Positions 5,737 to 54,883 of a stretch of DNA of 64,000 nt are shown in pieces (the first letter of the stretch is position 1; each line of letters opens with the position of its first letter). The notes beneath the pieces are model-generated. The model saw nothing but the letters and a program-made list of their open reading frames with translations. It was not told the origin of the DNA and searched no databases. Source of the stretch: Macrostomum lignano (lineage: Eukaryota); NCBI GenBank assembly GCA_002269645.1, contig NIVC01001238.1, forward strand, positions 1 through 64,000, given 5' to 3'. The position numbers were made by a program, and so were the translations under genes.

Positions 5737-7030
5737 CAGATAGGTAGGGCCAGCATGAACGAGTATTTCATTCTATTGAGTTTTCTAGATCTAACGGATA
5801 ACTCAGTTCATTAGAATGAAGTGGAGCATGTCAACAACAACAATAACAACAAAATACGCGGCCCGCATGCACAGTCACAGTTAGAGCAGGGCGCGTCAGA
5901 TGGCGCGCCGCAGAGCCTGGGAGCGAACAAAGTCCGTTCCGTGGGCAGTGTCGGGCGCTCCAGCGTCGCACAGCAGGCAGTCCACGCAGCCTGACCCCGC
6001 CTGAATGGACCCTGCAAAGTGAGCAGCAGGACGTCCTGAACAGGTTGGGGGCAGCAGCCCTCGGCCCGGATCACGTGGCCCGCCAGTTGAAGCATGTAGA
6101 GTTAATTAAAGTGCTGTTAATAAGCTGAAAATTAGACCAGCCTGTGTCTGGCGCAGGCAATCTGCGTGCAGGGCTCTGAAAACCGATTCCTGATAGAGCG
6201 ATCATCGCTGCATCGCCCCCCCCCCCGTTACGCGGCGGTGCCAGTTGTTGCCGCTCGGAATTCGGTGGTTGCGCCCTGTTGTTTGAAAACAACCGAATGG
6301 GAGAAAAATCGAAGCGCGAATCGCAGCTGATGATGAGGATTCAAAGAATTCCCACCGAGGAGGACAGATGCGAGAGCCGCTTCAGTTGGAGCTGGGCCAG
6401 GATTCGGGAATTCCAGCGGCGATCGCCGAGATCTGATGATGAGGCAGCTGCGGCTTTGATGGCGGAGCCCACGGTAGAGATACGGTAGCTGTGGGGGGGG
6501 GGGAGAGCCAGTGGGCAGCTCGGGACGCGGCAAGCAGCGGCACAGTTGGCCTTTCAGTCAGGAGGCGGTGGGGCGTGGGTGCCTCAGGCGACAGGCGGCA
6601 GTGAGCGATGCAAGCAGCGAAGTGGAAGGTAGCCGCATGTAGCCGCATGTAGCCGACGGCCGCCCCCCACCACACAGCACAAATTTCTCCCCAAATTCGC
6701 CGAAAAAATGGGGATCATTGACCGGGAGATTGACGGCGCTAAGAGTTGCGTGGGAATTACAGAATTTAGGGGAAGCGCTATCGGTGGCCGCTAAGATGCC
6801 TGCAATCCCGTGCCGATCTTGTCACCGGAGTGTCGGGCCTGCGACACATGCTGCTGGGACTCTATTAGCCAGAAATTTTCACCAAAGTGACAGCTTTAGT
6901 TTAGCAGGGTTCAGTTAATTGAAGGGGACAAATTCTAACGGGGATAAACCATTCAAGTACGAGATGTTCCTCCTTGCTTTTTGTTTAATCCCGCAACTAT
7001 TAAGATTTTAAATTTTCATTGCTTACGCAG

Positions 7031-7417
7031 CGGATGGCCCGAAACTGCAGCTGACCAACCAGCTGCACAACCTGCCGCTCCTGCGACCGCCGCTGCCGCT
7101 CTACAGTCTGTCTCAGCTGCCGCCGCTGACCAACCAGGCTGCGGCTGCCAGGGCAGCGGTGGCCGCCTCCGCAGCGGCAGCGGCAGCGGCGGCAGCGACA
7201 GCCTTGGCCAGACTGGCCAGTTGGCCGCAGCTCCCGCCGCTGCCACCGCCGCCTCCACCGACGCTTCAGCGAGTTTGCGCACCCTCCGCGGCGCCGAGAT
7301 CCAGCGTTGTCAAAGCGCGGCTGAGCAGCGGCAGGAGCCACCAGCAGCCGCAGCAGCAGGCCGGCTGCGTGTGCAACTACTGCGGCAAGCGGTTCAGCCG
7401 GCCCTGGCTGCTACAAG
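7031..7417 (+). CDS. scrt: Scratch-like Snail-family C2H2 transcription factor, internal exon
   Basis: Acceptor CGCAG at 7026-7030. Open frame DGPKLQ...polyAla...CNYCGKRFSRPWLLQG ending at the phase-1 donor CAAG|GTGACA (7418). The first exon was not identified. Confidence 0.8.
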
Positions 7418-8314
7418 GTGACAAAAACGCTCGGAGGGGGGGTTAATGGATTTGCATCTATATGGCATCTTCTCACGCCCCATTTTGGCTGCAGTTGGTC
7501 TCCTGTTCTGTCATTGCATCATCTGGCTTTCAACGCAACTGTCCCATTATTTGATCCGCTGCTTGTTTAACTTTGGTTGGCACTTCAACACAGGGTGGCA
7601 CATCAGAGCATCACATCAAATGGTAGGCCCTGGTGACTCTTTGTTGGGAGTCCCTCGGCCTGCAGCAGCTAGTCAATGCTCGCTCAGCACAAACATTTGG
7701 CCAGCCGAATATTGAATTAAAAAACTCAGCCTCAGTTCTAGCTTGAATGTCCTGTTGAGGTGGCTGAAATATTGCAAAATTGGTCAATTTGCAGCATACC
7801 GAAAGGATCAACTTGCAGCCACTTTAAGGACCCGGTTGGCAGTGCTGTGATGCAGTCGATTCCAGTGAATAGATAGCGGAATAGGCGACACTGGCCTCCC
7901 CGCTGTGTCTACGGACCACCCTGCAGCTAAGTTAAGCAAGAATGGAGGAAATCATAGTCGTCATAGGATCTAGGAGGGAGATCGATAACCAGCAGAGGTC
8001 GCAAAGCCACGGAGATCGGTGGCCCTGACAACCGGCCTCCAGCATCTTTCTCAGAAAGTCGAGTTTAGCGTCTTTCTACTTACCTTTGTGCATGCGCATA
8101 CCCATGAAGGCTGACCTCCAAGGCACGGAGAGTGTACATGCCTGACGATTATAAGTTCAGGGCCGCTGTACACCCTGTGTGAGTGCGTGTCTGCTTACAG
8201 TACTCGTATTGATGCGCTTGTACCCATGGTTTAGCGGAATGGTCGGACTGAAATGGTAATTTTTATGAAGAGACAAACTGTCCCGTTAACTCCTCGGTGC
8301 ACCCAAATCCGCAG

Positions 8315-8574
8315 GTCACCTGCGCACGCACACGGGAGAGCGGCCCTTCCCCTGCCAGCTGTGCGGCAAGTCCTTCGCTGACAAGTCCAACCTGCGGGCT
8401 CATGTGCAAACGCACTCCAAGGAGAAGCCGCACCAGTGCGGCCGCTGCGGCAAGCGGTTCGCCCTCAAGAGCTACCTCAGCAAGCACGCCGACAGCTCCT
8501 GCATGCGGCGGGAGAGATTCACGGCCGCTGCCGCCGCTGCTGCCGCTGCTGCCACAGGCGAAAGAATTCAGTAG
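8315..8574 (+). CDS. scrt: Scratch-like transcription factor, last exon (zinc fingers)
   Basis: GCAG|GT CAC gives [62 protein letters not shown], stop TAG 8572-8574. The ALKSYL.KH..SSC tail is the Scratch subfamily signature. Confidence 0.9.
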
Positions 8575-13835: not shown

Positions 13836-16271
<2,436 letters not shown>

Positions 16272-16294: not shown

Positions 16295-16625
16295 ATGGAA
16301 CGATATGGGGTGGGTCAATAGGCTAATGGGTTAACAAAGGATGCTAAGTATTGATAGGAAAACAGTATTAGGGCACAAGGGGTGGGTCAACAGGGGTTGG
16401 GTCAACAGAAGCGTGTCAACAGAGATGGGTCAACAGGGATGGGTCAACAGAGATGTGTCAACAAGAATAGGTCAAGGGTCAACAGGGATGGGTCAACAAT
16501 AATAGGTCAAGGGTCAACAGGGATGGGTCAACATGGGTAGGTCAGCAGGAAAGGGTCAATAGAGATGGGTCAGCAGAAAAGGGTCAAAAGAGATAGGTCA
16601 GCAGGTCAATATGGACGGGTCAACA
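16295..16625. repeat. Degenerate GGGTCAACAG-type repeat in the DYRK1 intron
   Basis: About 20 imperfect copies of gggtcaa(c/g)ag. Confidence 0.7.
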
Positions 16626-16661
16626 ATTAACAAAGTGGGACAGCTCGGCATGGCATTTCAC

Positions 16662-17156
16662 CTCATTAATAGTCTTGTAGGTCTTGATAAGTCCGGAGCT
16701 CAGCTTCATCAGCGGCCGGTCGGCAGGGTCGCGGTAGCAGCTTTTCAAGGACTCGCATCCGCTGGCCGATGGTACCGCTGCTGCAGCGGCTGGGGCTACG
16801 GCTGACGCGGTGGTCGATGCTGAATAGGCATGGAAACTGGTGCTCATGTCCGAGGAGGACAGAAACAGAGCTGTCGCTGCTGCAGCCGCCGCCGCCGCTG
16901 AGGACGCCGGAGCTGGTGGCGCAGCCGACACGGCCGTCACCGACACGGTCGTTATAGACGTCGATTTTCCAGCGCCCAACGATGTCGATACTAAGCTGCT
17001 GGGCGCCGGCTTGTTGTTTTCATAGTCTTGGCTGGCGGCCAGCTGGTCGGCCGTCATGATGCGGCCGTACAGCCCGGCCATGCTGGAGCTTCTAGCGGGC
17101 CTGAGACTCAATGCGTGCTTGCTGCGGCCACTGTGCCCAGTAGTGATGGTGCCCAG
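16662..17156 (-). CDS. dyrk1: DYRK1/minibrain N-terminal exon (Ala/Ser-rich)
   Basis: Ends RDPADRPLMKLSSGLIKTYKTINE|GTGAAA (compare DYRK1A LRKLSVDLIKTYKHINE), phase 0. The 5' boundary and start codon are uncertain. Confidence 0.85.
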
Positions 17157-18284
17157 CTGGGCAGTGGGAATAGCAGTTATTTTAGCCCTTTAAAATCTCT
17201 ATTGTAATAAGTGTTTGAAAAGCTGTCTGCCCCCTGCCTATATACATTTGATGCTTTGTACATCGTGCATATTAATCTTTATCAAAAATATTGCTTTTAT
17301 ATTTGCAACAAAAAATAGCCACCAAAATGTAACTCGATGAACATACCAATTAACTCAATATGGCCTTTGGTCTTCTATGCTTTTGATTGATTTAGAACTT
17401 AGAACTAACCAATTATATAGTTATGATTGATTAGGCAAATTAGGCAAAAATTAAATAGCTTTTACCATGTTTTGAGTCAATAACAAGACTAAGTTGAAAT
17501 TGCATTTTCAGTAAAAAAATTAAGTTGCATAACAAATATAATTTCAGTAGTTGCATATGTATGACTTAAAAACATCATCTTATTTATAGAATAAGCTAAT
17601 TAAAAATTGTGATACCATTGGAAAGTTAGTGCCTTTATCTTCTAATTTTGAACAAGAATGGTAAGTTCTAAAATAACTGGTAATATTGAAATATAGAACT
17701 AATATAATAAACTATTTTTTCTTATTCTTAACTCACCTTTTTATTAGATAAATCAAATTTTAACAGTATTTGAACTGTCTTTATTATTTTAATAGGTTAG
17801 CTTTGTTGTCTTAATCAGGAAACAAATTTTTATATACTGAATATGTTTATTACAAGAGAAAAAAAGTTAATTTTATTAACTACAAAAATAGCAAAAAGTA
17901 TTATTTTGCAGTTCTATCATGCATTTTAGGCCTAATACTAACTTTCATAGCTATTGTTAGAAAGTTTTTACTATTCTAACTATATTAGATATAATCTTAT
18001 CAGTAGAAAAAGGATAAAAGATAAAAGAGCAAAGAAATAATAAATAACAAAGTTAAATAAAAAAATAAATAGTATTTGTAAAAAATTATAAACTGATTTC
18101 TACTATCTTAAATTTACCAAAAATATTTTGGGTAAAATGGTCAACAAACCCTAAAAGACAAAATAAATTACAAAAACATTAAAAATTTAAGATAAAAAAG
18201 TTGCACTAATTCAAAACATTACAGAACATTAATTCAAAACAAAACAAAATTCAAATTCAAAACATATGCTTATATTTATAAAAC

Positions 18285-23272: not shown

Positions 23273-24237
23273 ATGATGGTGCGCCGTGGCGCAAGCCATT
23301 TGAAGAGAAGCCGTGACGCAAAGAAAAGACGACTGGCCGAGTCTGCTGGAGAGCGCGATGCCTGTCTGGAAGAGCAGCGGCGGCGAGACGCCGAGCGCCG
23401 CGCTGTTGAAGACGAGGCTGAGCGGTTTGCCCGTCTGGAGGAACAGCGGCAGAGACAGGCTGAATGTCGCGTTGCTGAAGACGAGGCTGAGCGGATTGCC
23501 CGTCTGGAGGAACAGCGGCAGAGACAGGCTGAGTGTCGCGTTGCTGAAGACGAGGCTGAGCGGATTGCCCGTCTGGAGGAACAGCGGCAGAGACAGGCTG
23601 AGTTTCGCGCTGCTGAGGACGAGGCTGAGCGGATTACCCGTCTGGAAGAGCAGTGGCAGAGACAGGCTGATTGTCGGCGCGGTGAATCTGTCACCAGGTT
23701 ACCTTGTGTCGAATCTATTGTGCCCTTTAGTCAGTTGCAGGTCAATACCACCATTGGCGATGGCAACTGCTTTTTTCATGCCGTGTGCGACCAGCTACGT
23801 GGCACACCGCATGAAACCGATGCCGCTACCCTTTGGCATGAGTTGGCCTGTCGTGCAGTTGAACTTTTGCCACAGTTGGTCGCGAATGGCATCATCGCGC
23901 CTGATTGCGCCGATGAGATTGCGAATTCCTCCTTTCAGGAAGGGGTTTATATTTCAGACGAAGTGGCAGCTCTGTTTAGTAGCTGCTTTGACATGGACCT
24001 GGTGATTTACCAGTCCAATGGTAATGTGCTGCAATATTTCAAGTGTGACAAGCAGCCTCCCAATGCCACTGTGCGTGTGCTCTTGAGTCACGAGCACTAC
24101 GAGTCGCTCAGACTTCGACCGTCTCTGCAAGCTTCTTCAGGTGCAGAGTGTCCCAGGCCAATGGCAAGCGGCTCAAAGGCAGTGCCAGTTGACATCCACA
24201 GCTCATGTGCCGACATTGGAGCATCGGGTGATCATCG
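23273..24237 (+). CDS. Helitron protein exon 1: STPR-like 23-aa repeats and OTU cysteine protease domain
   Basis: Repeats EDEAERIARLEEQRQRQAECRVA (69 bp). OTU motifs GDGNCFFHAV and LLSHEHYESL. Phase-2 donor CG|GTGAGT. Confidence 0.8.
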
Positions 24238-24311
24238 GTGAGTCTTCTTCATTTGTCTTTTTGATTTGAACTGCTGTCCTCACAACATGTCTTATTCCAC
24301 TGTACTCACAG

Positions 24312-25103
24312 ACGTGCCGAGCCATTGCTGCCAGAGGCCCCGGCTCACCAGTGTGGACCAATGAACAACGCCTGCAATGACTGTGGCGCATTGTTTTGGG
24401 CCAAAGAGACGCGCAACTTCTGCTGCGCCAAGGGCAAGGTGAAGCTGCCCACCCGTACGATGCCGCAGGTCTTGGCAGATCTTTACACGGGGCAGCACCG
24501 ACTCAGTGCAGAGTTCCTGGCCCACATCAGGAGCTACAATGCGGTGCTGCACCTCACATCTCTGGGTGTGAAGCTCAGAATGGTGCCTGGCTATAGTCCC
24601 AGCTTCATCATCAGCGGCCAGCTGCATCACAATATGGGGCCGCTGCTTGCCGACCCCTCAGCCGAGCCGCATGGCTGGCAGGTGTATTTTACTGACCGCG
24701 AATTGGAGAGCCGCCTGAGCCTCAGTCAGAGAGTGAAGCCGGAGCTGCTAAAGCTGCTGCAAACTCTGCTGCATCAATCCAACGGCTACGTGCAAAGCCT
24801 TCGAGCTGCTGTTCAGCGAATCAGTGGCGACCCTGAGCTGGGAGATGCGTGAATTGTGATTCACCCGGACTGAAGACCAGCAGGGGAACACATTCGGTGA
24901 GTTTGTGGTGTCAAAATAAACTATGATGTATATATTGTATATATACATGATACAATATATAAAAATATAAAAATATAAAAATATGATTTTTCCTCAGGCG
25001 CTACAATCTTCCTATGGCCAATGAGGTTGGCATTCTTATCGTTGGTGGCACAGAGGACGCAACGACAAATTATTGAGATATTGAATTATAGATACGGTGA
25101 ATA
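24312..25103 (+). pseudogene. Helitron Rep/helicase N-terminal region (exons 24312-24896 and 24998-about 25103), with premature stops, truncated
   Basis: CNDCGALFW...CCAKGKVKLP, IRSYN..L..TSLG, F.I.GQLHH..G.L, QVYF.D, RPAGEH.RRYN.P..NEV motifs. GT-AG introns 24238-24311 and 24897-24997 keep the frame. Confidence 0.75.
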
Positions 25104-43197: not shown

Positions 43198-43644
43198 TCA
43201 CACCCGCAGCATCATCTGCATCGTATACGGAGGGCCTCGTAGTCTCCAATGATAGTCGAGGCCTTGTAGGCGGCACCGGACGCCTGCGTGGCTGAGTGCA
43301 CGCCGTTCAGGTTGGATTTCATGCAGCTTCCCCACCAGCAGCCGCCCCTGCCATACCCGGTGCTGCAGCTTGAGGAGGAATAAGCGTCGTTGTCCCTGTT
43401 GAAGGTGGAGAACTGATAGCCTCTCGAGCCCCGGCCAAGAAGTCGGAGGTGAAGGTGGAGCTGTTGCTCCCAAAGCTCTTGTTGGCGTTGAGTAAGCTGC
43501 CGCAGTTCATCCTGTAGTTCTTGCTGCAGTTCCCGACCGTGAAGCTGAGATACTCGAACGCGTAGGACTCTCCTTCGAAGGTCTGGGCCTCGATTCGCAG
43601 GTTTCTAGGGCTATTCGCACTCACATCGTGGATGTTATCGAGTC
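43198..43644 (-). pseudogene. Fibrinogen-related domain (FReD) gene, last exon, two apparent frameshifts
   Basis: GLDNIH...LRIEA...YAFEYLSFTVG...Y, then after a shift near 43425 GYQFSTFNRDND....C.....GGCWWGSC.KSNLNG, then after a shift near 43225 TMQMMLRV*. Confidence 0.8.
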
Positions 43645-43736
43645 CTGCAATTGGCATGGTCAAAAACTTACATACTCGCCAAGTTGAGCACACACACAGA
43701 CAATGTTTTACACCCAGCACTGCATGGGATGCTCAC

Positions 43737-43886
43737 CAGCCCAGAACTCTGTGGCATTCCCGAAGCCGCGGACGTAGTCATCCCAGCTCCTGTTGAAGGC
43801 GATTTGACCCGTCTGTCTCTGCTGGAACACCCAGAATGTCCGGCCGCCGATCTGCCGCAGGTATCCGAAACTCATGGCCGAAAAAT
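43737..43886 (-). CDS. FReD gene internal exon
   Basis: CTCCAG|(x)AT FSAMSFGYLRQIGGRTFWVFQQRQTGQIAFNRSWDDYVRGFGNATEFWAG|GTGAGC, phase 1 on both sides. Confidence 0.85.
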
Positions 43887-44666
43887 CTGGAGTGGCTGGA
43901 GCAGTGTACATTCTTTTACTTGGGCAGCAAGAAGCAAAAGTGTTCAATCAGCAAATGAAATCGGTGAATTTTTTTCATTTTTAATTTTTGATTTTTAATT
44001 TTTTCAGCCAACTGCATGGGCCAAATTCATGGAATTTGCGGAACTTGCAACAATTAAGTTCCTAGCAACGCAGCGACAGCCACCTCAGCATGAGCGCCAT
44101 CACTTCATACAGGCAACAATGGCTTTTCATCTATCTTCTAGGGGCTGACTGGTACAGGGACTGCTGTTATAATTCAAAATTCTGTAATTGCCTTTCAATC
44201 TCGACAGACAGAAAATCGATTTCAAAATTATCGATAAATAATTGATTTCGATTGCCAAATAATTGAGAAAAACTACGTACTTTGGACTGAGGTTGGTGTT
44301 TAGAAGGGTCACCGTCCCTAGTAAAGGGTTCTTATTCACAGTGAGTCATGATAAAGGCCATGATAAAGGTTGGTGCGCTACCCTCGAAGGGGCGTGGTAC
44401 CCACCCTACCGCTCCACCTGACCGGGCTGGACTCTCAAGGATGGCCCGACCCAGGAAAGGAACAGCTAGCGACCCAGCTACAGTGTGAATGTAGTAAAGT
44501 TGAAAAAAGTGTTTAAAAAACACTGTATGAAAAATGTAATGATAAAACTGCTCACAAAGTACGACGTATTACTCAAAGTAACACTTCAGCTTTATTGCCT
44601 AGTCAATACAATGATGAAATTAACAGAGGCTCAAATTTCATTTCCTATTGTGAGAGAAAGCACAGT

Positions 44667-45113
44667 TCAAGGAGCAGAGCACACCGAATAGCTGGATAGC
44701 AATGAGTTCAATAACTTCCACCCTTCTTCCTGCGGTCTCCGCCCTTCTTCTTGCTGTTTCCGCCATTGTTCCTGCGTCGTCCGCCATTGTTCCTGGGTTG
44801 TCCGCCATTGTTCCTGCGTTGTCCGCCCTTCTTCTTGCTGTTTCCGCCATTGTTCCTGTGTTGTCCGCCATTGTTCCTGTGTTGTCCGCCATTGTTCCTG
44901 TGTTGTCCGCCATTGTTCCAACGGTCTCCGCCCTTGTTCCAGCGGTCTCCGCCCTTGTTCCAGCGGTCTCCGCCCTTGTTCCAGCGGTCTCCGCCCTTGT
45001 TCCAGCGTTGTCCATCCGTCACTGGAGCCATCAGGCAGACTGGAAGCCGCGATGGCGCACAGAAGCACCGCAGTGGCCGCAAGAAGAAGACGCCTGGATG
45101 AGTTTGTCGCCAT
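44667..45113 (-). CDS. Signal-peptide ORF with 7-aa repeats (PLEQGRR/TTQEQWR); its first 91 nt (45023-45113) may instead be FReD exon 1
   Basis: ATG, hydrophobic LLLAATAVLLCAIAASS, and an open frame through about 14 21-bp units. The candidate phase-1 donor TCCA|GTGACG at 45022 matches the phase of the FReD acceptor. Confidence 0.6.
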   Translation of the reverse strand: MATNSSRRLLLAATAVLLCAIAASSLPDGSSDGWTTLEQGRRPLEQGRRPLEQGRRPLEQGRRPLEQWRTTQEQWRTTQEQWRTTQEQWRKQQEEGRTTQEQWRTTQEQWRTTQEQWRKQQEEGRRPQEEGWKLLNSLLSSYSVCSAP

Positions 45114-45286
45114 TCTGTTTGCTTGAAGCAGATTGGTTGGTCAGCTAGCAAAACGCTATTTGGGAGTTTTGGGTAATGAGGTATAGCGCGGTTATTTATG
45201 CGGAATTTAAAGATACGATAGGTTGATTACGCAACCGCCGCGGAAATTCTCCGGCGATTGAAATATAAAAGTTTTCAAATGTGAGG

Positions 45287-45670
45287 AAGGTCAGTGTGAG
45301 GGAGGTCAGAGTGAGGGAGGTCAGTGTGAGGGAGGTCAGTGTGATGGAGGTCAGAGTGAGGGAGGTCAGTGGGAGGGAGGTCAGTGGGAGGGAGGTCAGT
45401 GTGAGGGAGGTCAGTGTGATGGAGGTCAGTGTGAGAGAGGTCAGTGTCATGGAGGTCAGTGGGAGGGAGGTCAGAGGGAGGGAGGTCAGTGGGAGGGAGG
45501 TCAGAGTGAGGAAGGTCAGTGGGAGGGAGGTCAGAGGGAGGGAGGTCAGTGGGAGGGAGGTCAGAGTGAGGAAGGTCAGTGTGAGGGAGGTCAGAGTGAG
45601 GGAGGTCAGTGGGAGGGAGGTCAGAGTGAGGGAGGTCAGTGGGAGGGAGGTCAGAGTGAGGAAGGTCAGT
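45287..45670. repeat. 15-bp minisatellite (GAGGGAGGTCAGAGT), about 25 copies
   Basis: Direct reading. Reverse complement of the 51575-53130 array. Confidence 0.95.
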
Positions 45671-47029
45671 GTTATTCATCCATATCATGTCAGCAATACC
45701 CATGAGTCTAGATTCCTTAGCAACGCCCTTATAAGCATATACTGACACTGCTCATTTTTGACGTATGCAGTGCGAAAAACTGATTTGAGCGAGTTGTTCG
45801 CGTATATTGAAACCTACTTACATTTAGTTAATTGATTTGCAGGAAGTTCTATATCCATGTACAGACTCTTTTTCGCTCCAAGCTTTGCATAAAGTTATAA
45901 GTACATTTTGTCCAACTCGGCAAATTTCTTGTCAATGCCTTTGCCTTGATTGTATTGCAAACATTCTGACTTCAGGTGGTTCCCTGACGTTTCCAAAAGT
46001 TAAAGGCTGGATGATTCACGAATAATTAAGAAATATGGAATATGAATTTGTAACTAATTTACAGTTGAAACTCTTTCGTGTATTTTACAAGATGAATTGT
46101 GTAAATATGAATATGTATCCATGCAAATGTTATGCATTTCGCAAACCAAGAATCAGCACGTGAAGTTGACTGGGCCGCGAATTAGTGTTCTAATGTGCAT
46201 ATGAATGACAACCGATACAATCACGATTGTCTCAACGAATCCATTCATTGTTTCTCTGAATATTCAACTTTTATAACAAAAGCATCAGAAGCATACAAAA
46301 TAGCTTTAAATTATAACAAAACTGATGTCTGCAGTGTACAAATAGAGTGAGTTAATAATTAGTGCATTCAAATCTTATCGCAATTCAGAAATTAATGCGC
46401 AGAGAATTATGGCACATATTATTGATTAATTTTTTGGTCCGTCAACTACTTTTAGTAGTTTATTGGGCTATATAATCGATCAAAGGCGCTAATAGCTATC
46501 TGTATACTGTATAGGAGCTCGTTAGAGTTCATTTGGCAGAGAAAGCGCACTGCGCGGTTCAATTATCACGCGTGGTGTACCTTCCCTGCAGCCTATTTCT
46601 CGTGCAAGTCCTGCACCGCAATCGTACATGTACTTCACAGCATTCTGCTAGTACACTGCAATTCGTGCATCCGGTACAATCGCAATGCAACCGCATTGGT
46701 TCCACACACGCTGGCATCCGGTATACGCCAGCACAACAATTGGTTCCACAGGTATCACAAAGAACAGACTACTCAGAAGTGCCTCTTCTTCGGGCACATT
46801 CTCGGGTAAGCCCTGCTCACCAGATCTCCACACTGGGTCAAGGTCACATCAGGGACTACTCAATAACTAGTTTTTGAGTAGTCCCTGGGTCACTTGCCAC
46901 TCTAAATAGCAAACTGCCTCTCCCTGTATCCTAAGCTAATCCTGACTCACATCGGGATGCTGCAAACAGCACCATCATCATAGCAGCAACAGGCACTCCA
47001 GCCAATCAGAGCAGGCAGCCGAATATCAG

Positions 47030-47251
47030 CTAACTGTGCACCCAGCCAAAGCTCTGTCCAACCCGGATCTTCTGTCCAGCCGTGGCAGCGAATTGAAACT
47101 GTTCGGGCGCCTCAAACACCAGCACGACGGTGCTGCCCAGGTTGAACTGGCCGAACGGCTCGCCTTTGCCGAAGCGCGGATTCGGCTGGAGGCGTCGGTC
47201 AGAAAAGCCGGCCGGCCCGGCCTGTTTGGCGCCGCGGTTGGTTGCCAGCTC
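47030..47251 (-). CDS. pisd: Phosphatidylserine decarboxylase, last exon
   Basis: CCCACAG|ELATN...[21 protein letters not shown]...KIRVGQSFG, containing the LGST autocleavage motif. Stop TAG 47030-47032. Confidence 0.92.
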
Positions 47252-48077
47252 CTGTGGGAGCAGAGAAGAGAGTTCTCAGCTACATGGGACTAAGACCTGA
47301 CTGAGTAGCGGATCGCGGTCTCCTAGATCGTCCCATCCGGGATGCTTGTCGGGACGATTTGCAGGGTTAATTAAACCACCCAAAGCACCAAGTGTGCACT
47401 AAGTAACCCGTACAGCAGTCCGACGTCTAGCCGACGTATGACGTCTTTATCAGTGGATGTATAGATAATTGCTGTACGGGTAACGACCACTAGATATTAC
47501 CTCTTTAATTAGAACATTCAAAGTAAAATTATTTGAGTTGACAACTTCGAAATTTACTTAAACTTTGGACCTGTTTGTACGCGTTGAATGATAATTTTTG
47601 ACAGACTTTTTCTACAAAATTTTGTCCTCAAACAAGACTTAATATCTAACAATTGATTAGCAAATGCAAATTTATTTTTTACTGTGGTATCGAAAGTCAC
47701 TATAGGCTACTGAAACCCGACTGTAAATCGATTTTATACTGTTCTAAGGTGCTGAGAAGGTGCTAAAGTGCAGTCGGTTGTCAAGGAGGTGGTACTCAGA
47801 TTCCCTGAAACAGCTAACCTACTGTGAAGTCTGGGTTTGCGTGCCGAAAGGGTGGCCTCTGTATGGCTCTGTTTACTCAATATATTTATTAGTCATTATT
47901 GTGGGGTTGGGGTGCAGCGATGCGCGATTGGTCGAGAATTGGTAAACAAGTTTAGGCGAGAGAATGAGTCATGAATAATAATGTGGGGCAGAGAGTGCAG
48001 CGCACGGCCTACGCCCTACACCTACGTGATGGTATTTAGTATGGCACGGTGAAGGCATCCCTCCCCGCGACTCTTAC

Positions 48078-48455
48078 CGGATCGCAGGCGACGCTGATGG
48101 ACCCGACGCCAGTGGCTCCGACAGCCGTCATGCTGAAGAAGCCGTGGCGCCACTCGCCGACAAAAACCGCCCGCTCGTTCACGCAGAACAGGCCGGCCAC
48201 GCACGCGGCCACGGGCGGCGCCACGGACAGCAAGCGGCCGGGGAAGTGGCGCCTGGCCAGCACCAGCCAGTCGGCCGGTGAGTGAAACCGGTGATAGTCA
48301 CCCGGTGCCAGGTAGATCGTGCAGTGGAACAGCTGCGTACCGGGCAGGCGGCGCAGGCCTTCCAAGTAGGGACCGTCGCTACTCGACGCTTTATGGTTGC
48401 TAGGCAGAGTCTGGTTTTTGTCGAATTCACCAATCGGCTGGGGACCAAGGAAACC
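48078..48455 (-). CDS. pisd: Phosphatidylserine decarboxylase, internal exon
   Basis: GFLGP...LFHCTIYLAPGDYHRFHSPADW...RRHFPG.LLSV...LFCVNER...GEWRHGFFSMTAVGATGVGSI; donor CCG|GTAAGA. Confidence 0.95.
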
Positions 48456-49032
48456 CTGCGGTGGTTGGCAGGTGGTTGGCAGGTGGTTTTGTGGCATTTG
48501 CACTGGCGATTGGAGCTAGAAATGGTCTTTCATAGCTAGTCATGTCCATTCCTACGCCACGCACTCAGACAGGGTGCACAGCGAACCCGACTTTCTAATT
48601 GTCAGACATACATACTGTCGGTGCCTTGGGGGTTGATCCTACGTACAGGTCCCACACTACCCCAATAGGCCTCTTGAAGTTGTCATTGTTAACTGAATTT
48701 CTGGCATCAGAGACCAATCCGTGATCCGTGTTTTAGCATCCGGAAAATCGAGGACGAACCACCTGTTGCACAGTATTGCTCAAACAAACATTAGAGCCAC
48801 ATTCGACTACTAATTAGTAGAAATTAGTTTGATAAAGTCCCGGTTTGGCGAGCCAAAGGGGTGAAACAGTGCCGGTTAACAGCCCTCCCGACCTTCAAAG
48901 ATAAGGGACTTGTAGGCGGGTAGAGAAGGATTAACGAGCACCAGAACTCTTAAAGTGTACATTGAGAACCAGGTGCTTTAAACTACAGAACAGAACGGCA
49001 TTAACAGATATAACAGGCCTGATTCAGCTCAC

Positions 49033-49359
49033 CTGTAAGCTGTAGGTGATGCCCTTCACCTGCTCCAGGTGACCGGCATAAACCCGGCCCAGGCTGAGCA
49101 CCCGGCCGTCGGCGGGGGACACCAGGTCACTCGTCGGGCACACCGGTCGAAGTCCCGGCCGGAGGCTGCGAGAGAAAAACTCGGCCAAGCTGTTGAAATC
49201 CGCCAGGCCCTGACAGTCGGCCTCCGTCAGGTCGCAGCTGCAGAGGCGGCTGTACAGCCGGTAGACTGGGGCGCGGGCCAGCCGGGGCAGCGGGCGGCTG
49301 TGACAGCGGCCCCAGGCGCGGGAGATGAAGTTCAGAGGCAGCGGCAGGCGGCAGTAGGC
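49033..49359 (-). CDS. pisd: Phosphatidylserine decarboxylase, internal exon
   Basis: ISRAWGR...FFSRSLRPGLRP...VSPADGRVL..G....EQVKGITYSLQ|GTGAGC. Confidence 0.93.
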
Positions 49360-49394
49360 CTGAGGGTGGGCAGAGGGGCGGACCAGCTGGCTGA

Positions 49395-50040
49395 GGGAAT
49401 GGCTACGCAACTGGGTGAGGGAGTGGCTACCCAACTGGGTGAGGGAGTGGCTACCCAACTGAGTGAGGGAGTGGCTACCCAACTGAGTGAGGGAGTGGCT
49501 ACCCAACTGGGTGAGGGAGTGGCTACCCAACTGGGTGAGGGAGTGGCTATACCCAACTGGATGAGGGAGTGGCTACCCAACTGGGTGAGGGAGTGGCTAC
49601 CCAACTGAGTGAGGGAGTGGCTACCCAACTGAGTCAGGGAGTGGCTACCCAACTGAGTGAGGGAGTGGCTACCCAACTGAGTGAGGGAGTGGCTACCCAA
49701 CTGGGTGAGGGAGTGGCTACCCAACTGGGTGAGGGAGTGGCTACCCAACTGAGTGAGGGAGTGGCTACCCAACTGGGTGAGGGAGTGGCTACCCAACTGA
49801 GTGAGGGAGTGGCTACCCAACTGGGTGAGGGAGTGGCTACCCAACTGGGTGAGGGAGTGGCTACCCAACTGAGTGAGGGAGTGGCTACCCAACTGGGTGA
49901 GGGAGTGGCTACCCAACTGAGTGAGGGAGTGGCTACCCAACTGAGTGAGGGAGTGGCTACCCAACTGGGTGAGGGAGTGGCTACCCAACTGGGTGAGGGA
50001 GTGGCTACCCAACTGGGTGAGGGAGTGGCTACCCAACTGG
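49395..50040. repeat. 24-bp intronic minisatellite (GAGGGAGTGGCTACCCAACTGGGT), about 27 copies
   Basis: Direct reading. Abuts the PISD acceptor. Confidence 0.96.
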
Positions 50041-51033
50041 CTAGATGAGAGGCAGCTGACTGACCCGTTGATCCATAAAGTGCAAGGTAAGATTGACGCA
50101 AATGAGTGAACTACTTAAAGATCAGTGGAAATTTCTCATACAAATTGTTTGCACTAAAAAGCTGCTGATATCTCTTTGAGTTTGCAGCCCCCCCCCATGC
50201 AGTCCTGGCTGCCCCACCCAGTCTTATCTCTCCGCGATAGCAGCCCGCAATTTATCGGGAAAGTTTACAACATTTTTCAGCATTTCAAAGGTCGGTGGAA
50301 AATTACAGAGTTTCCGGAACCGGTCACGCAACCAGTTGGTGAACCAGTTGGCCGGTTGTTCAAACTGGATTGGCTCAGACAAAGCCTGCAGCTCTGGCCC
50401 CCCAGAGCAAACCAGAATTCGACAAGTCAGCTGAGGTAGATCCGAACTCCAATAGCGACTTAGCAAGGCTGAGAACACAATCTTTTTAAGGCAGGTAAAA
50501 ATTTCAACATTTTTCGCTAGCAGTGAGAGGGTTGAGCGAAGCACCGCCTCGAAGCGAACTTTATGAGCCGAACTTGCCCTCGGATTTCGGCGCTGAGACA
50601 GGCGGCAGACCGCTCGTTTCGCTCGTACTGCCCCCCCACTGACCCCCTCTCGCTGACCCCCTCACTGACCCCCCTCTCACTGACCCCTCTCCCCGACTCC
50701 GCCCTCGCTGACTCTCCTAGCTCGTATTACTGACTCCAGTTCACTGACTCATCATTTATTCAATGGCATCCGTGAGATGAGCTTGGGGGAAATTGCTGAG
50801 ATCTCAAAGGCGAATGAGATTCGCTTATTGGCCGCCCCGAAGGGGGGCACCAGACTGCTGGTCTGTTTTGCTAAATCGGTAATCAATGCATTACATGTAG
50901 ATAACAATGCAACTTAATAATGAGCCACGCTCCATTGTCACCTTGATTGTTAAGAATTTCAACAAAGATTTCAACAAGTATTTCAACAAAGATTTCCTGA
51001 TATATCGATTCTGACACCGGGCTGTTGACTCAC

Positions 51034-51213
51034 CCTGATGAGGCAGGTCCGCAGAGCCATCCAGCTGCCAACAACGGCAGCCAGGAGGTGCAGCAGGGCG
51101 AGCAGCGGCAGCAGCTGCCAGCCCGAGACCGCCGCACCGTCAGAGCAGATGGTGGCAACCACGATGGCGCTGGCAACGAGGGTTCGCTTGCGGCACTGCG
51201 ACAGGCGCATCAT
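51034..51213 (-). CDS. pisd: Putative PISD first exon (basic N-terminus and hydrophobic anchor)
   Basis: MMRLSQCRKR...LLPLLALLHLLAAVV...CLIR ends at the strong phase-0 donor AGG|GTGAGT, in phase with the exon at 49359. The link is inferred. Confidence 0.55.
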
Positions 51214-51574
51214 CCTTAGTTTTATTAAAGTACAATGGGAACTTTCCGAATAAAAACTTTGCCGACGAAGCTTCTGAGCGACTTCAGGTCTCAGTCTCAC
51301 CAGCTTGAGGTTTCTGCCACTCTCACTAATACTAGTTTTGTATGCGATTTTTGTAAACAATTCTTATCTGTTCTGCAGCTGAGCTCGAGGCTGGGGTTGC
51401 CCGAACGCCAAGAGGCTTCATATTGGCTGATCTTCGAATTTGGGTAGTGCTTCAACAGAACTGCGCAGGGACCCAGTTAGGCGCTTAATAGGAGAGTGGT
51501 TTAGCAAGTTCTGCCAAACTCAAGTTACTGTTGCAGACCTGAGCTGGTCTTGCTGACCCCGCGAAACATTTGCA

Positions 51575-53130
51575 ATGACCTCCCTCACACTGACCTCTCT
51601 CACTCTGACCTCCCTCACTCTGACCTCCCTCACTCTGACCTCCCTCACACTGACCTCCCTCACTCTGACCTCCCTCACTCTGACCTCCCTCACTCTGACC
51701 TCCCTCACTCTAACCTCCCTCATTCTGACCTCCCTCACTCTGACCTCCCTCACTCTGACCTCCCTCACTCTGACCTCCCTCACTCTGACCTCCCTCACTC
51801 TAACCTCCCTCATTCTGACCTCCCTCACTCTGACCTCCCTCACTCTGACCTCCCTCACTCTGACCTCCCTCACTCTGACCTCCCTCACTCTGACCTCCCT
51901 CACTCTGACCTCCCTCACTCTGACCTCCCTCACTCTGACCTCCCTCACTCTGACCTCCCTCACTCTGACCTCCCTCATTCTGACCTCCCTTACTCTGACC
52001 TCCCTCACTCTGACCTCCCTCACTCTAACCTCCCTCATTCTGACCTCCCTCACTCTGACCTCCCTCATTCTGACCTCCCTCACTCTGACCTCCCTCACTC
52101 TGACCTCCCTTGCACTGACCTCCTTCACTCTGACCTCCCTCACTCTAACCTCCCTCACTCTGACTTCCCTCACTCTGACCTCCCTCACACTGACCTCTCT
52201 CACTCTGACCTCCCTCACTCTGACCTCCATCACTCTGACCTCCCTCACTCTGACCTCCCTCACTCTGACCTCCCTCACTCTGACCTCCCTCACTCTGACC
52301 TCCCTCACTCTAACCTCCCTCATTCTGACCTCCCTCACTCTGACCTCCCTCATTCTGACCTCCCTCACTCTGACCTCCCTCACTCTGACCTCCCTTGCAC
52401 TGACCTCCTTCACTCTGACCTCCCTCATTCTGACCTCCCTCACTCTGACCTCCCTCACTCTGACCTCCCTCACTCTAACCTCCCTCACTCTGACCTCCCT
52501 CACTCTGACCTCCCTCACACTGACCTCTCTCACTCTGACCTCCCTCACTCTGACCTCCCTCACTCTGACCTCCCTCACTCTGACCTCCCTCACACTGACC
52601 TCCCTCACTCTGACCTCCCTCACTCTGACCTCCCTCACTCTGACCTCCCTCACTCTGACCTCCCTCACTCTGACCTCCATCACTCTGACCTCCCTCACTC
52701 TGACCTCCCTCACTCTGACCTCCCTCACTCTGACCTCCCTCACTCTAACCTCCCTCACTCTGACCTCCCTCACTCTGACCTCCCTCACTCTGACCTCCCT
52801 TGCACTGACCTCCTTCACTCTGACCTCCCTCACTCTGACCTTCCTCACTCTGACCTCCCTCACTCTGACCTCCCTCACTCTGACCTCCCTCACTCTGACC
52901 TCCCTCACTCTGACCTCCCTCACACTGACCTCCCTCACTCTGACCTCCATCACTCTGACCTCCCTCACTCTGACCTCTCTCACTCTGACCTCCCTTGCAC
53001 TGACCTCTCTCACTCTGACCTCCCTCACTCTGACCTCCCTCACTCTGACCTCCCTCATTCTGACCTCCCTCATTTTGACCTCCCTTGCTCTGACCTCCTT
53101 CACTCTGACCTCCCTCACTCTGACCTCCCT
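51575..53130. repeat. 15-bp minisatellite (CACTCTGACCTCCCT), about 100 copies
   Basis: Direct reading. Confidence 0.97.
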
Positions 53131-53494
53131 TAAATTTTAAACTTGAAAAAATTTAAGCTTCAATTGCTGGAAAAATCGTGTGTGATTATTAATAAAGTAA
53201 AAGAAGATTTACACAAACCCTTTTTGTTTCCGTAGCAGATCAGATGTTTTTACTTAAAACTGGCATATCGCGGTACTAATCAAGTGCGGGCCAGACCGAA
53301 ACAAATTAATAAGGTTGGCTATTAGCAGCTTGCACCTGGCAAAATGAAGCCACACCTACTGGTAAATAAGACGAACTGGTAAATTCCAGTTAATTTGAGA
53401 TTTTCTCAGCACATCTGAATGTTCACCTGGCACCAAGGCTCTGTTGCAGGTGCTCGGGGTTGCATAATCAACCTATCGTGTTCTCTTCAAATTC

Positions 53495-53508
53495 CGCATA
53501 AATAACCG
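53495..53508 (+). promoter_or_regulatory. TATA-like element conserved in both duplicated arms
   Basis: AAATTCCGCATAAATAACC lies about 100 nt upstream of ATG 53600. The same motif occurs inverted at about 45190-45208, upstream of ATG 45113. Confidence 0.4.
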
Positions 53509-53599
53509 GTATGCTTCATGGCTCAGAACTCTCAGAACGCCCAGAACTCTCAGATAGCGTTTTGCTAACTGCCAAAACAATCTGCTTCAAGCAAACAGA

Positions 53600-54562
53600 A
53601 TGGCGACAAACTCATCCAGGCGTCTTCTTCTTGCGGCCACTGCGGCGCTTCTGTGCGCCATCGCGGCTTCCAGTCTGCCTGATGGCTCCAGTAACGGCTC
53701 CACGAAGGACGGACAACGCTGGAACAAGGGCGGAGACCGCTGGAACAAGGGCGGAGACCGTTGGAACAAGGGTGGTGACGGCTGGAACAAGGGCGGAGAC
53801 CGCTGGAACAAGGGCGGAGACCGCTGGAACAAGGGCGGAGACCGCTGGAACAAGGGCGGAGACCGCTGGAACAAGGGCGGAGACCGCTGGAACAAGGGCG
53901 GAGACCGCTGGAACAAGGGCGGAGACCGCTGGAACAAGGGCGGAGACCGCTGGAACAAGGGCGGAGACCGCTGGAACAAGGGCGGTGACCGCTGGAACAA
54001 GGGCGGAGACCGCTGGAACAAGGGCGGAGACCGCTGGAACAAGGGCGGAGACCGCTGGAACAAGGGCGGAGACCGTTGGAACAAGGGCGGAGACCGTTGG
54101 AACAAGGGCGGAGACCGTTGGAACAAGGGCGGAGACCGCTGGAACAAGGGCGGTGACCGCTGGAACAAGGGCGGAGACCGCTGGAACAAGGGCGGAGACC
54201 GCTGGAACAAGGGCGGAGACCGTTGGAACAAGGGCGGAGACCGCTGGAACAAGGGCGGAGACCGCTGGAACAAGGGCGGAGACCGTTGGAACAAGGGCGG
54301 AGACCGCTGGAACAAGGGCGGAGACCGCTGGAACAAGGGCGGAGACCGCTGGAAGAAGGGCGGTGACGGCTGGAAGAAGGGCGGAGACCGCTGGAAGAAG
54401 GGCGGTGACGGCTGGAAGAAGGGCGGAGACCGCTGGAACAAGGGCGGTGACGGCTGGAAGAAGGGCGGAGACCGCTGGAACAAGGGCGGTGACGGCTGGA
54501 AGAAGGGCGGAGACCGCTGGAACAAGGGCGGTGACGGCTGGAAGAAGGGGGGAGGTTATTGA
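53600..54562 (+). CDS. Predicted secreted protein: signal peptide plus about 40 (RWNKGGD) repeats; inverted paralog of 44667-45113
   Basis: Near-identical signal peptide MATNSSRRLLLAATAALLCAIAASS, an uninterrupted 320-aa frame, and AATAAA at about 54669. Confidence 0.55.
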   Translation: MATNSSRRLLLAATAALLCAIAASSLPDGSSNGSTKDGQRWNKGGDRWNKGGDRWNKGGDGWNKGGDRWNKGGDRWNKGGDRWNKGGDRWNKGGDRWNKGGDRWNKGGDRWNKGGDRWNKGGDRWNKGGDRWNKGGDRWNKGGDRWNKGGDRWNKGGDRWNKGGDRWNKGGDRWNKGGDRWNKGGDRWNKGGDRWNKGGDRWNKGGDRWNKGGDRWNKGGDRWNKGGDRWNKGGDRWNKGGDRWNKGGDRWKKGGDGWKKGGDRWKKGGDGWKKGGDRWNKGGDGWKKGGDRWNKGGDGWKKGGDRWNKGGDGWKKGGGY

Positions 54563-54756
54563 ACCCTTTGCTATTCAATTATTTGGTGCTCTGCTCCTTG
54601 AACTCCTTCTCCCACAATGGGAAATGGAATCAGGGCCTTCGTGTTTTCTCTTTTATTGACTTGACCAATAAATCTGTAGTGTTACTTTGGTGGTACTTTG
54701 TGAGTAGTTTTATAATAAAATTGTTCACCCTGTGTTTTCGCAACCATTCTTTCAAC

Positions 54757-54883
<127 letters not shown>

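Follow-up and report, generated by a model that had tools for sequence, protein, structure and literature searches.

A 21-bp repeat read in two frames by an inverted gene pair of Macrostomum lignano, with a frameshifted duplicate as a candidate pseudogene

We have analyzed the first 64,000 nucleotides of contig NIVC01001238.1 of Macrostomum lignano (assembly GCA_002269645.1; hereafter, the window), in which two open reading frames (ORFs) start with nearly the same signal-peptide-like sequence and continue into arrays of one 21-bp repeat that each of them reads in a different frame. The ORFs are present as an earlier, sequence-only reading of this DNA had described them, at 45113->44667 on the minus strand (148 aa; copy 1) and at 53600->54562 on the plus strand (320 aa; copy 2). 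The two copies are true paralogues in an inverted duplication that flanks a phosphatidylserine decarboxylase (PISD) gene. On balance, and with modest confidence, we favor the view that copy 2 is an intact gene in its ancestral frame and that copy 1 is a duplicate, patched by gene conversion and frameshifted, that is decaying or neutral.

Homology between the copies exceeds the ORFs. In blastn and alignment it extends over 44493..45236 (-) in copy 1, from promoter-proximal sequence to beyond the poly(A) signal, and over 53458..54762 (+) in copy 2, and it takes in a TATA-like box, the 5' untranslated region (UTR), the signal peptide, the array, the stop region, the 3'UTR and an AATAAA. The duplicated cassette proposed earlier is thus borne out from the TATA-like box to the AATAAA, with both copies read from the same ATG in different frames. 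The TATA-like box CATAAATAAC has the same letters at 45191..45200 (-) and 53497..53506 (+). The ATG and a common 31-codon block, MATNSSRRLLLAATAVLLCAIAASSLPDGSS, follow at 45021..45113 (-) in copy 1 and at 53600..53692 (+) in copy 2, where Ala16 replaces Val16. Next comes a junction spacer, which is GACGGATGG (9 nt; 45012..45020, -) in copy 1 and AACGGCTCCACGAAGGACGG (20 nt; 53693..53712, +) in copy 2, the latter encoding NGSTKDG with an N-G-S sequon. The arrays, each with its terminal TAT TGA, occupy 44708..45007 (-) and 53717..54562 (+), and an AATAAA lies approximately 105 nt after the stop at the array end (44591..44596, -, in copy 1; 54667..54672, +, in copy 2), the whole arrangement being duplicated. 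The 3'UTR contains the motif GTGCTCTGCTCCTTGAACT. No introns are evident, and the ORF runs unbroken from ATG to stop in both copies.

The copies sit 8.5 kb apart, and the window holds no third copy of the gene. Between them lie the PISD exons (49122-49033, 48368-48072 and 47257-47045, within 47045..49122, -), recognized by Pfam PF02666 and by tblastn with the exons of a relative. A tandem-repeat scan found the same 15-bp minisatellite, TGACCTCCCTCACTC, upstream of copy 1 (45280..45672) and of copy 2 (51576..53130; 104 copies) in inverted arrangement, so the duplication was inverted and took in the minisatellite. The 5'UTR of copy 2 also carries a 9-bp microsatellite (CTCAGAACT x3.7; 53522-53554, +) that amounts to an 18-nt insertion relative to copy 1; it brings upstream ATGs at 53511 and 53520, which may precede the transcription start.

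The 21-bp unit CTGGAACAAGGGCGGAGACCG has 43 matches at no more than 3 mismatches, all within the two arrays, where 0 are expected. Cut in one register, copy 1 comprises exactly 14 units and copy 2 exactly 40, each set then followed by TAT TGA, which sharpens the earlier estimates of about 14 PLEQGRR/TTQEQWR and about 40 RWNKGGD units. Units 1-4 of copy 1 equal the copy 2 consensus, and units 5-14 are diverged and include an 84-bp higher-order repeat; copy 2 contains 21 identical units and, at its 3' end, a 42-bp higher-order repeat (RW[NK]KGGD-GWKKGGD). The first unit begins 106 nt from the ATG in copy 1 and 117 nt from it in copy 2. This 11-nt offset, confirmed from the sequence together with the common unit and the two spacers, places the ATG frame of copy 1 at +2 relative to copy 2. 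Copy 1 reads PLEQGRR four times and then TTQEQWR/KQQEEGR variants, and copy 2 reads RWNKGGD (hereafter, the G frame). Units 1-4 are the same DNA in both copies, yet they spell PLEQGRR in copy 1 and RWNKGGD in copy 2; nucleotide homology, unrelated proteins and an indel not divisible by three are thus found together. The two frames lie in separate genomic copies and are accounted for by a DNA indel.

The junction can be aligned in two ways: as one 11-nt indel with 2 substitutions, or as a 15-nt in-frame difference (NGSTK of copy 2, a partial duplicate of the preceding DGSS codons) together with a 4-nt GGAT-GGAC tandem duplication in copy 1. Beyond the junction, the copy 1 array has no stop in any of its three forward frames. 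Read in its own frame, copy 1 overruns the conserved TGA by 14 codons into the homologue of the copy 2 3'UTR; read in the RWNKGGD frame, it stops at the conserved TAT-TGA common to copy 2 (stop at 44708-44710, -). A T at the copy 1 junction (GGATGG vs GGACGG in copy 2) also creates a third-frame ATG that opens a 125-aa ORF, MDNAGTRAET... (44638-45015, -), so that in copy 1 an ORF, ATG-initiated or continuing, is found in each of the three frames.

The common N-terminal block of 31 codons (93 nt) is identical at 92/93 positions, the sole difference being at +47 (Val/Ala). Its near-identity in both ORFs had been recognized before, with a length of 30 codons that is one too short. It encodes MATNSSRRLLLAATA[V/A]LLCAIAASSLPDGSS, and a 44-nt probe from it matches only the two ATG sites in the window, 0 being expected by chance. 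The N-terminus MATNSSRR-LLLAATA[V/A]LLCAIAA-SS has an RR n-region, a hydrophobic core of approximately 15 residues (9-residue Kyte-Doolittle mean >2 across residues 9-18) and small residues AIA/AAS, and by inspection cleavage as AIA-A or AAS-S satisfies the -3/-1 rule. The n-, h- and c-regions of a classical secretory signal peptide are therefore all present, and secretion is predicted for the products of both copies. The copy 1 ATG has a strong Kozak context, with A at -3 and G at +4.

Signal-peptide identity of this degree need not reflect function. Between -22 and +161, 3 substitutions and the indel are all that separates the copies, vs 87% identity with 3 indels in the 5' flank and 77% identity with 5 indels in the 3' flank (tract vs 3' flank, Fisher P 1.6e-7). 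The block shows 0 synonymous differences in approximately 26 synonymous sites, for which P is 0.001-0.03 if the protein alone were constrained, and the identity continues into the 5'UTR and the first array units. Because synonymous differences are absent and the adjoining 5'UTR and array are identical as well, the signal-peptide identity indicates gene conversion and is no evidence of selection on copy 1; these counts do not bear out the identical secretory cassette as a sign of function. Unit 5 of copy 1 is a hybrid, its 5' half like the CGT variant of copy 2 and its 3' half of the derived type, and fits a conversion boundary.

Three independent lines, namely the shared terminal stop, codon usage and a silent excess in copy 2, suggest that RWNKGGD is probably the ancestral frame. 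Read in the G frame, the two arrays terminate at a homologous [A/G]GT TAT TGA, the products closing with ...KKGGGY and ...RRKKGGSY before the stop. For codon usage, a local reference of 588 codons was taken from Pfam- or tblastn-supported exons in the window, with a GC content at third codon positions (GC3) of 0.81. In the copy 2 array, this value is matched by the G frame (0.83, vs 0.57 in each other frame), and the mean ln relative synonymous codon usage (RSCU) is +0.29 in the G frame vs -0.31 and -0.33 in the others. Even the diverged units of copy 1 score best in the G frame (ln RSCU -0.09 vs -0.48 and -0.42).

The codon-level test of unit variation in three frames that the sequence-only reading had called for was performed on variant events inferred by a minimum-spanning tree over unit types, and the G frame of copy 2 alone shows a silent excess. 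There, 5/8 events are silent (expected 0.19, P ~0.008), the CGC/CGT, GGC/GGT and GGA/GGT variants being silent as previously observed; in the +2 frame of copy 2 the GGT-GAC variant is a nonsense change that yields 8 TGA stops. The G frame of copy 2 carries a coding signature. The earlier proposal that frameshifting gave birth to a new cationic Trp/Gly-rich protein probably has the direction reversed, the cationic frame being the older one by its shared stop, codon match and GC3.

The copy 2 mature protein would have approximately 297 aa, a pI of 10.6 and a net charge of about +40, with 30% Gly, 16% Lys and 13.5% Trp. It is presumably disordered, and from its composition we would suggest, with low confidence, an extracellular structural or adhesive-matrix role. 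Copy 1 read from its ATG gives a mature product of approximately 125 aa with a pI of 9.1 and a net charge of about +1.5, rich in Gln, Arg, Glu and Thr, and the copy 1 array read in the G frame gives a +23 Gly/Asn/Arg/Lys peptide. Any new protein at this locus would be the near-neutral Gln/Glu/Thr/Trp/Arg product and not the cationic one rich in Trp and Gly. The +2-frame unit PLEQ-G-RR (44922-45005, -) formally constitutes a Gly plus dibasic amidation/cleavage motif, present four times in copy 1, and the copy 2 array also spells this consensus when read in the +2 frame. Such units are a possible amidated-peptide precursor motif; in copy 1 the motif is probably a by-product of the frame, since the units that contain it are conversion-derived copies of the copy 2 consensus.

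Variation in copy 1 does not significantly favor any frame. Of 18 events, 7 are silent in the +2 frame (expected 0.21-0.29, P 0.23), 3 in the G frame and 4 in the +1 frame, none above the neutral expectation of 0.19-0.29. The earlier statement that variation favors each copy's own frame is thus supported for copy 2 and not for copy 1: the TT codon pairs on which it drew (ACA-ACA x3, ACA-ACG, ACA-ACC and ACG-ACG) are indeed silent only in the copy 1 frame, and they are a picked subset of the sites. Nor does the +2 frame show purifying selection or codon adaptation, with a mean ln RSCU of -0.42 and GC3 of 0.52 vs 0.81 in local genes. Units 5-14 have fallen from a GC content of 0.67 to 0.55, toward the 0.34-0.38 of the flanks; changed unit positions comprise 26 S>W vs 2 W>S, counts that are small and not of independent events; and GC3 is lowered in every frame. 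This drift from GC to AT is as relaxed constraint predicts and opposite to codon adaptation in the new frame. Substitutions independent of frame, drift to background composition (in small counts from units that are not independent) and a +2 shift right after the signal peptide relative to the ancestral frame are what a pseudogene would display. The familiar lesions of one are missing, copy 1 having no stop in any array frame, no extra indels, and a kept promoter, Kozak context and AATAAA. The openness of its ORF is without weight as evidence of function, because all three frames of the array are stop-free.

These observations can be joined as follows. Both copies represent a lineage-restricted, apparently single-exon animal gene in which a TATA-like box and a short 5'UTR precede the signal peptide, followed by an array of 7-residue repeats, a stop, a 3'UTR and an AATAAA. 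Its ancestral and still working reading would be (RWNKGGD)n ending GG[S/G]Y-stop, encoded by copy 2 as a secreted cationic protein. In copy 1, which is shorter and looks older, gene conversion with copy 2 has homogenized the 5' end, starting near -22 and reaching into the first 2-4 units, and the 11-nt difference at the junction moves its array into the +2 frame. Given a repeat that is stop-free and open in three frames, the frameshift automatically gives the 148-aa ORF of PLEQGRR/TTQEQWR. On this view copy 1 is most likely a pseudogene, young or 'open'; its ORF shows no apparent sequence sign of upkeep by selection, and we infer that the copy is non-functional.

Several observations weigh against this account. 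Copy 1 retains the TATA-like box, the strong Kozak ATG and the AATAAA; its signal peptide is intact, and its ORF stays open over 148 codons. Its two 84-bp repeats differ at 6 sites, 4 of which are silent in the +2 frame and 0 in the other frames (nominal P 0.04-0.1). In the derived unit TGG>AGG removes the old-frame Trp and GGG>TGG supplies one in the new frame, a swap that could be adaptive. Out-of-register indels are absent from the old part of the array, though the flanks have many. Finally, the frameshift may be recent or old: the indel and 2 of the 3 substitutions in the conversion tract crowd into 18 nt, and these clustered changes may post-date conversion, may be one complex event or may be an old island that escaped conversion.

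The strongest alternative, that copy 1 is a functional paralogue of the type envisaged by Ohno and encodes a working secreted Gln/Glu/Thr/Trp/Arg repeat protein in the new frame, draws on these same points, and we regard it as possible but clearly less probable than a decaying or neutral copy 1. It has in its favor a strong ATG that opens 148 codons, the retention of promoter and poly(A) elements, TT codon pairs that vary at silent positions only, the 4/6 silent differences of the higher-order repeat, a Trp re-created in the new frame in 7 units, and the array without out-of-register indels. Other observations count against it. The full set of events is not silent above neutral, and 3/4 silent differences between the 84-bp repeats involve CpG dinucleotides (CGC<->CAC twice, CAA<->CGA), sites at which mutation alone is expected to be frequent. 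The +2 frame uses disfavored codons (GAA, CAA and ACA), and its GC3 has fallen. Signal-peptide identity is explained by conversion, and openness is automatic in a stop-free repeat. In its boldest form, with both copies expressed and secreted, copy 1 a young Ohno-type invention tuned in its new frame by the GGG>TGG Trp and the silent TT changes, and conversion keeping the promoter and signal cassette identical, we find this scenario doubtful.

The polarity originally proposed, in which PLEQGRR/TTQEQWR is ancestral and an 11-nt insertion in copy 2 gave a new RWNKGGD protein, appears improbable. A single 11-nt indel without an outgroup gives no direction by itself, and the extra segment of copy 2 resembles a partial duplication (GGCTCCAGTAAC / GGCTCCACGAAG), which would be derived. 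However, both copies stop at the same TAT-TGA at the array end in the RWNKGGD frame, no other frame of the consensus unit agrees with local codon usage and the diverged units of copy 1 also score best in the RWNKGGD frame, while the partial duplication of copy 2 can be covered by the 15-nt in-frame event, leaving the 4-nt GGAT-GGAC of copy 1 as the actual frameshift.

An assembly or consensus error, or a rare allele, is also a very unlikely source of the 11-nt difference; copy 1 would in that case encode RWNKGGD/RNNGGQH ending GGSY. In that frame copy 1 does make a coherent Gly/Asn/Arg/Lys protein with GG in 14/14 units and the ancestral stop, and frameshifts in repeat-bearing secreted genes have proved to be assembly errors elsewhere, as in Drosophila glue genes (PMC6352337). 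The difference nevertheless falls at the junction, where the sequence is unique, and outside the array and any homopolymer, its 11 nt are flanked by 2 substitutions, unlike usual consensus errors, and the old units of copy 1 are without a silent excess in the G frame (3/18). Least probable of all is that neither locus codes for protein and both are minisatellites with a chance ATG and hydrophobic stretch, as might be suspected from the tandem arrays (other 20-21-bp ones included) that fill approximately 27% of the window, the lack of a homologue in the databases searched and a signal-peptide conservation due to conversion, but against which stand the canonical n/h/c signal peptide after a strong-context ATG with a TATA-like box before it, the stop exactly at the array end with AATAAA behind it in a duplicated arrangement, and a GC3 and silent excess specific to the ATG frame of copy 2.

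Spliced or alternatively initiated products were considered and rejected. Removal of the repeat by splicing at TCCA/GT, named earlier as an outcome that would undo the frame argument, is not supported: the sole decent acceptor AG (44693-44692) is in copy 1 and is not conserved in copy 2. Directly downstream of copy 1, on the same strand, lies a relic of a fibrinogen C-terminal domain (PF00147) gene (43215-43938, -), split across two frames that overlap near 43421-43430 without intron signals and not duplicated beside copy 2; the split suggests either a pseudogene with a frameshift or an error in the sequence. That the signal-peptide block is a 5' exon spliced at TCCA/GT to this gene was rejected, as the donor is phase 1 and the fibrinogen-domain exon needs phase 2; furthermore, an AATAAA already belongs to copy 1, and fibrinogen-domain sequence is missing downstream of copy 2. 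Leaky scanning to the internal RWNKGGD-frame ATG of copy 1 was set aside in view of the strong context of the first ATG and of a product that would be without a signal peptide.

External searches returned no homologue, transcript or orthologue, the source organism being absent from the databases searched. Exact-sequence look-up of both ORFs found no record, and a word-indexed homology search with copy 2 gave 0 matches. An exhaustive HMMER search produced 818 matches, all unrelated heptad-periodic low-complexity proteins and none with the signal peptide. Metagenome DNA was scanned twice, with degenerate patterns for the repeat and for the signal peptide, each time with 0 matches, and Rfam also gave 0 matches on the whole window. 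Pfam recognized nothing on copy 2 and only a sub-threshold low-complexity match to DUF874 on copy 1. A full-text literature search for WNKGGD retrieved 0 papers, and the heptad RWNKGGD is not a described motif. The gene family is apparently an orphan, lineage-restricted in the collections searched, of which the protein collection is without the source and its close relatives (best PISD exon matches 70-72% identical).

The recognized domains and exons (PISD, a DYRK-like kinase, C2H2 zinc fingers and a fibrinogen C-terminal domain) mark the window as metazoan DNA. Elsewhere in the window, the contrast between coding and non-coding DNA is strong, confirmed exons having GC3 of approximately 0.81 vs a GC content of 0.30-0.40 in non-repeat flanks. 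The tandem arrays of the window have periods of 4-355 bp. The PISD gene (47045-49530, -) meets a 24-bp minisatellite (49383-50040) that abuts or overlaps the ORF with its most upstream recognized exon. A DYRK1/minibrain-like kinase exon is found at 15390-16271 (-; PF00069, E 2e-43), and the Ala/Ser-rich ORF adjoining it upstream (16623-17189, -) has no Pfam match. C2H2 zinc-finger exons at 7012-8571 (+; FSRPWLLQG..., HTGERPFPC...) are confirmed by Pfam as zf-C2H2 only, and we take them to have a Snail-family look. A 69-bp (23-codon) tandem repeat at 23351-23676 (4.7 copies), whose unit translates to the charged, coiled-coil-like ERIARLEEQRQRQAECRAAEDEA, is possibly coding. A 195-aa ORF at 24265-24849 (+) has a Cys-rich N-terminal motif, CNDCGALFWAKETRNFCCAKGKVKL, and no Pfam match; it may resemble Helitron-like transposon proteins.

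Proof that copy 1 is translated and under selection would make the pair an exceptionally clear animal case of a new secreted protein made by frameshift of a repetitious gene, with ancestor and derivative 8.5 kb apart and the causal indel still visible. The pair is otherwise cautionary: in stop-free coding repeats a long ORF outlives any frameshift, and a copy that is dead or neutral can retain a 'conserved signal peptide' through gene conversion, so that neither feature is evidence of function. Copy 2, as an orphan gene for a strongly cationic, Trp-rich secreted protein, may merit its own study.

Among known systems, the Drosophila glue genes, in which repeat frameshifts repeatedly turned out to be assembly errors (PMC6352337), offer a warning; given the position of the 11-nt difference in unique junction sequence, such an error is unlikely here. 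The closest system described is the mammalian REST/semen-coagulum locus (SEMG, Svs2-6 and PI3), where the UTRs and the exon for the signal peptide are conserved but the main coding exon, rich in repeats, is hypervariable and in some members is read in a different frame (PMC7556508). As in those genes, the signal peptide and non-coding parts are kept between the paralogues described here and the secreted repeat part is radically different; that locus also has very basic repeat proteins (Svp5, pI 10.3) and documented frame changes between orthologues or paralogues (PMC7556508). Unlike the REST genes, our pair has no separate signal-peptide or 3'UTR exon and no evident intron, neither protein search gave significant homology to SEMG/Svs/PI3 or any Pfam family, and the signal-peptide identity comes from gene conversion.

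The -1 frameshifts of DSPP are among the known frameshift products of variable-number tandem repeats (VNTRs) in secreted or mucin-like genes. The MUC1 frameshift protein and MUC1-ARF are others (PMC5074479). In these cases, as here, a frame shift before or within a coding repeat turns the whole array into another polypeptide without a stop; they are alleles or alternative initiation in one gene, often pathogenic, whereas the difference here is fixed between two paralogues.

Copy 2 may resemble molluscan shematrin and KRMP proteins with a basic C-terminus ending in Tyr, and the Trp- or Lys-rich adhesive foot proteins. The likeness to the shematrin/KRMP type comprises a signal peptide, a Gly-rich short repeat, a basic C-terminus ending in Tyr (KKGGGY / RRKKGGSY) and an orphan-like, fast-evolving character, with no homology detected. 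The best-looking HMMER matches, the hydrophobin-annotated XP_025374716.1 of the fungus Acaromyces ingoldii (KPGKGGD) and a protein of the diatom Proboscia alata (KPSKGGD), are secreted and have 7-residue repeats ending KGGD, but have no signal peptide or flanks in common with copy 2, and their likeness is convergence from periodic low complexity, not homology.

Novelty by frameshift in repetitious genes, and frameshifted duplicates, are reportedly the subject of Ohno (1984), Raes and Van de Peer (2005) and Okamura et al. (2006), the Ohno paper being among the references of PMC8935012. Copy 1 differs from such cases in that it looks degraded, with GC>AT drift and lost codon bias, and in that its product is a prediction from the DNA. 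What it shares with them is a stop-free oligomeric repeat open in other frames, in which an indel not divisible by three gives a long, unrelated ORF behind the same start.

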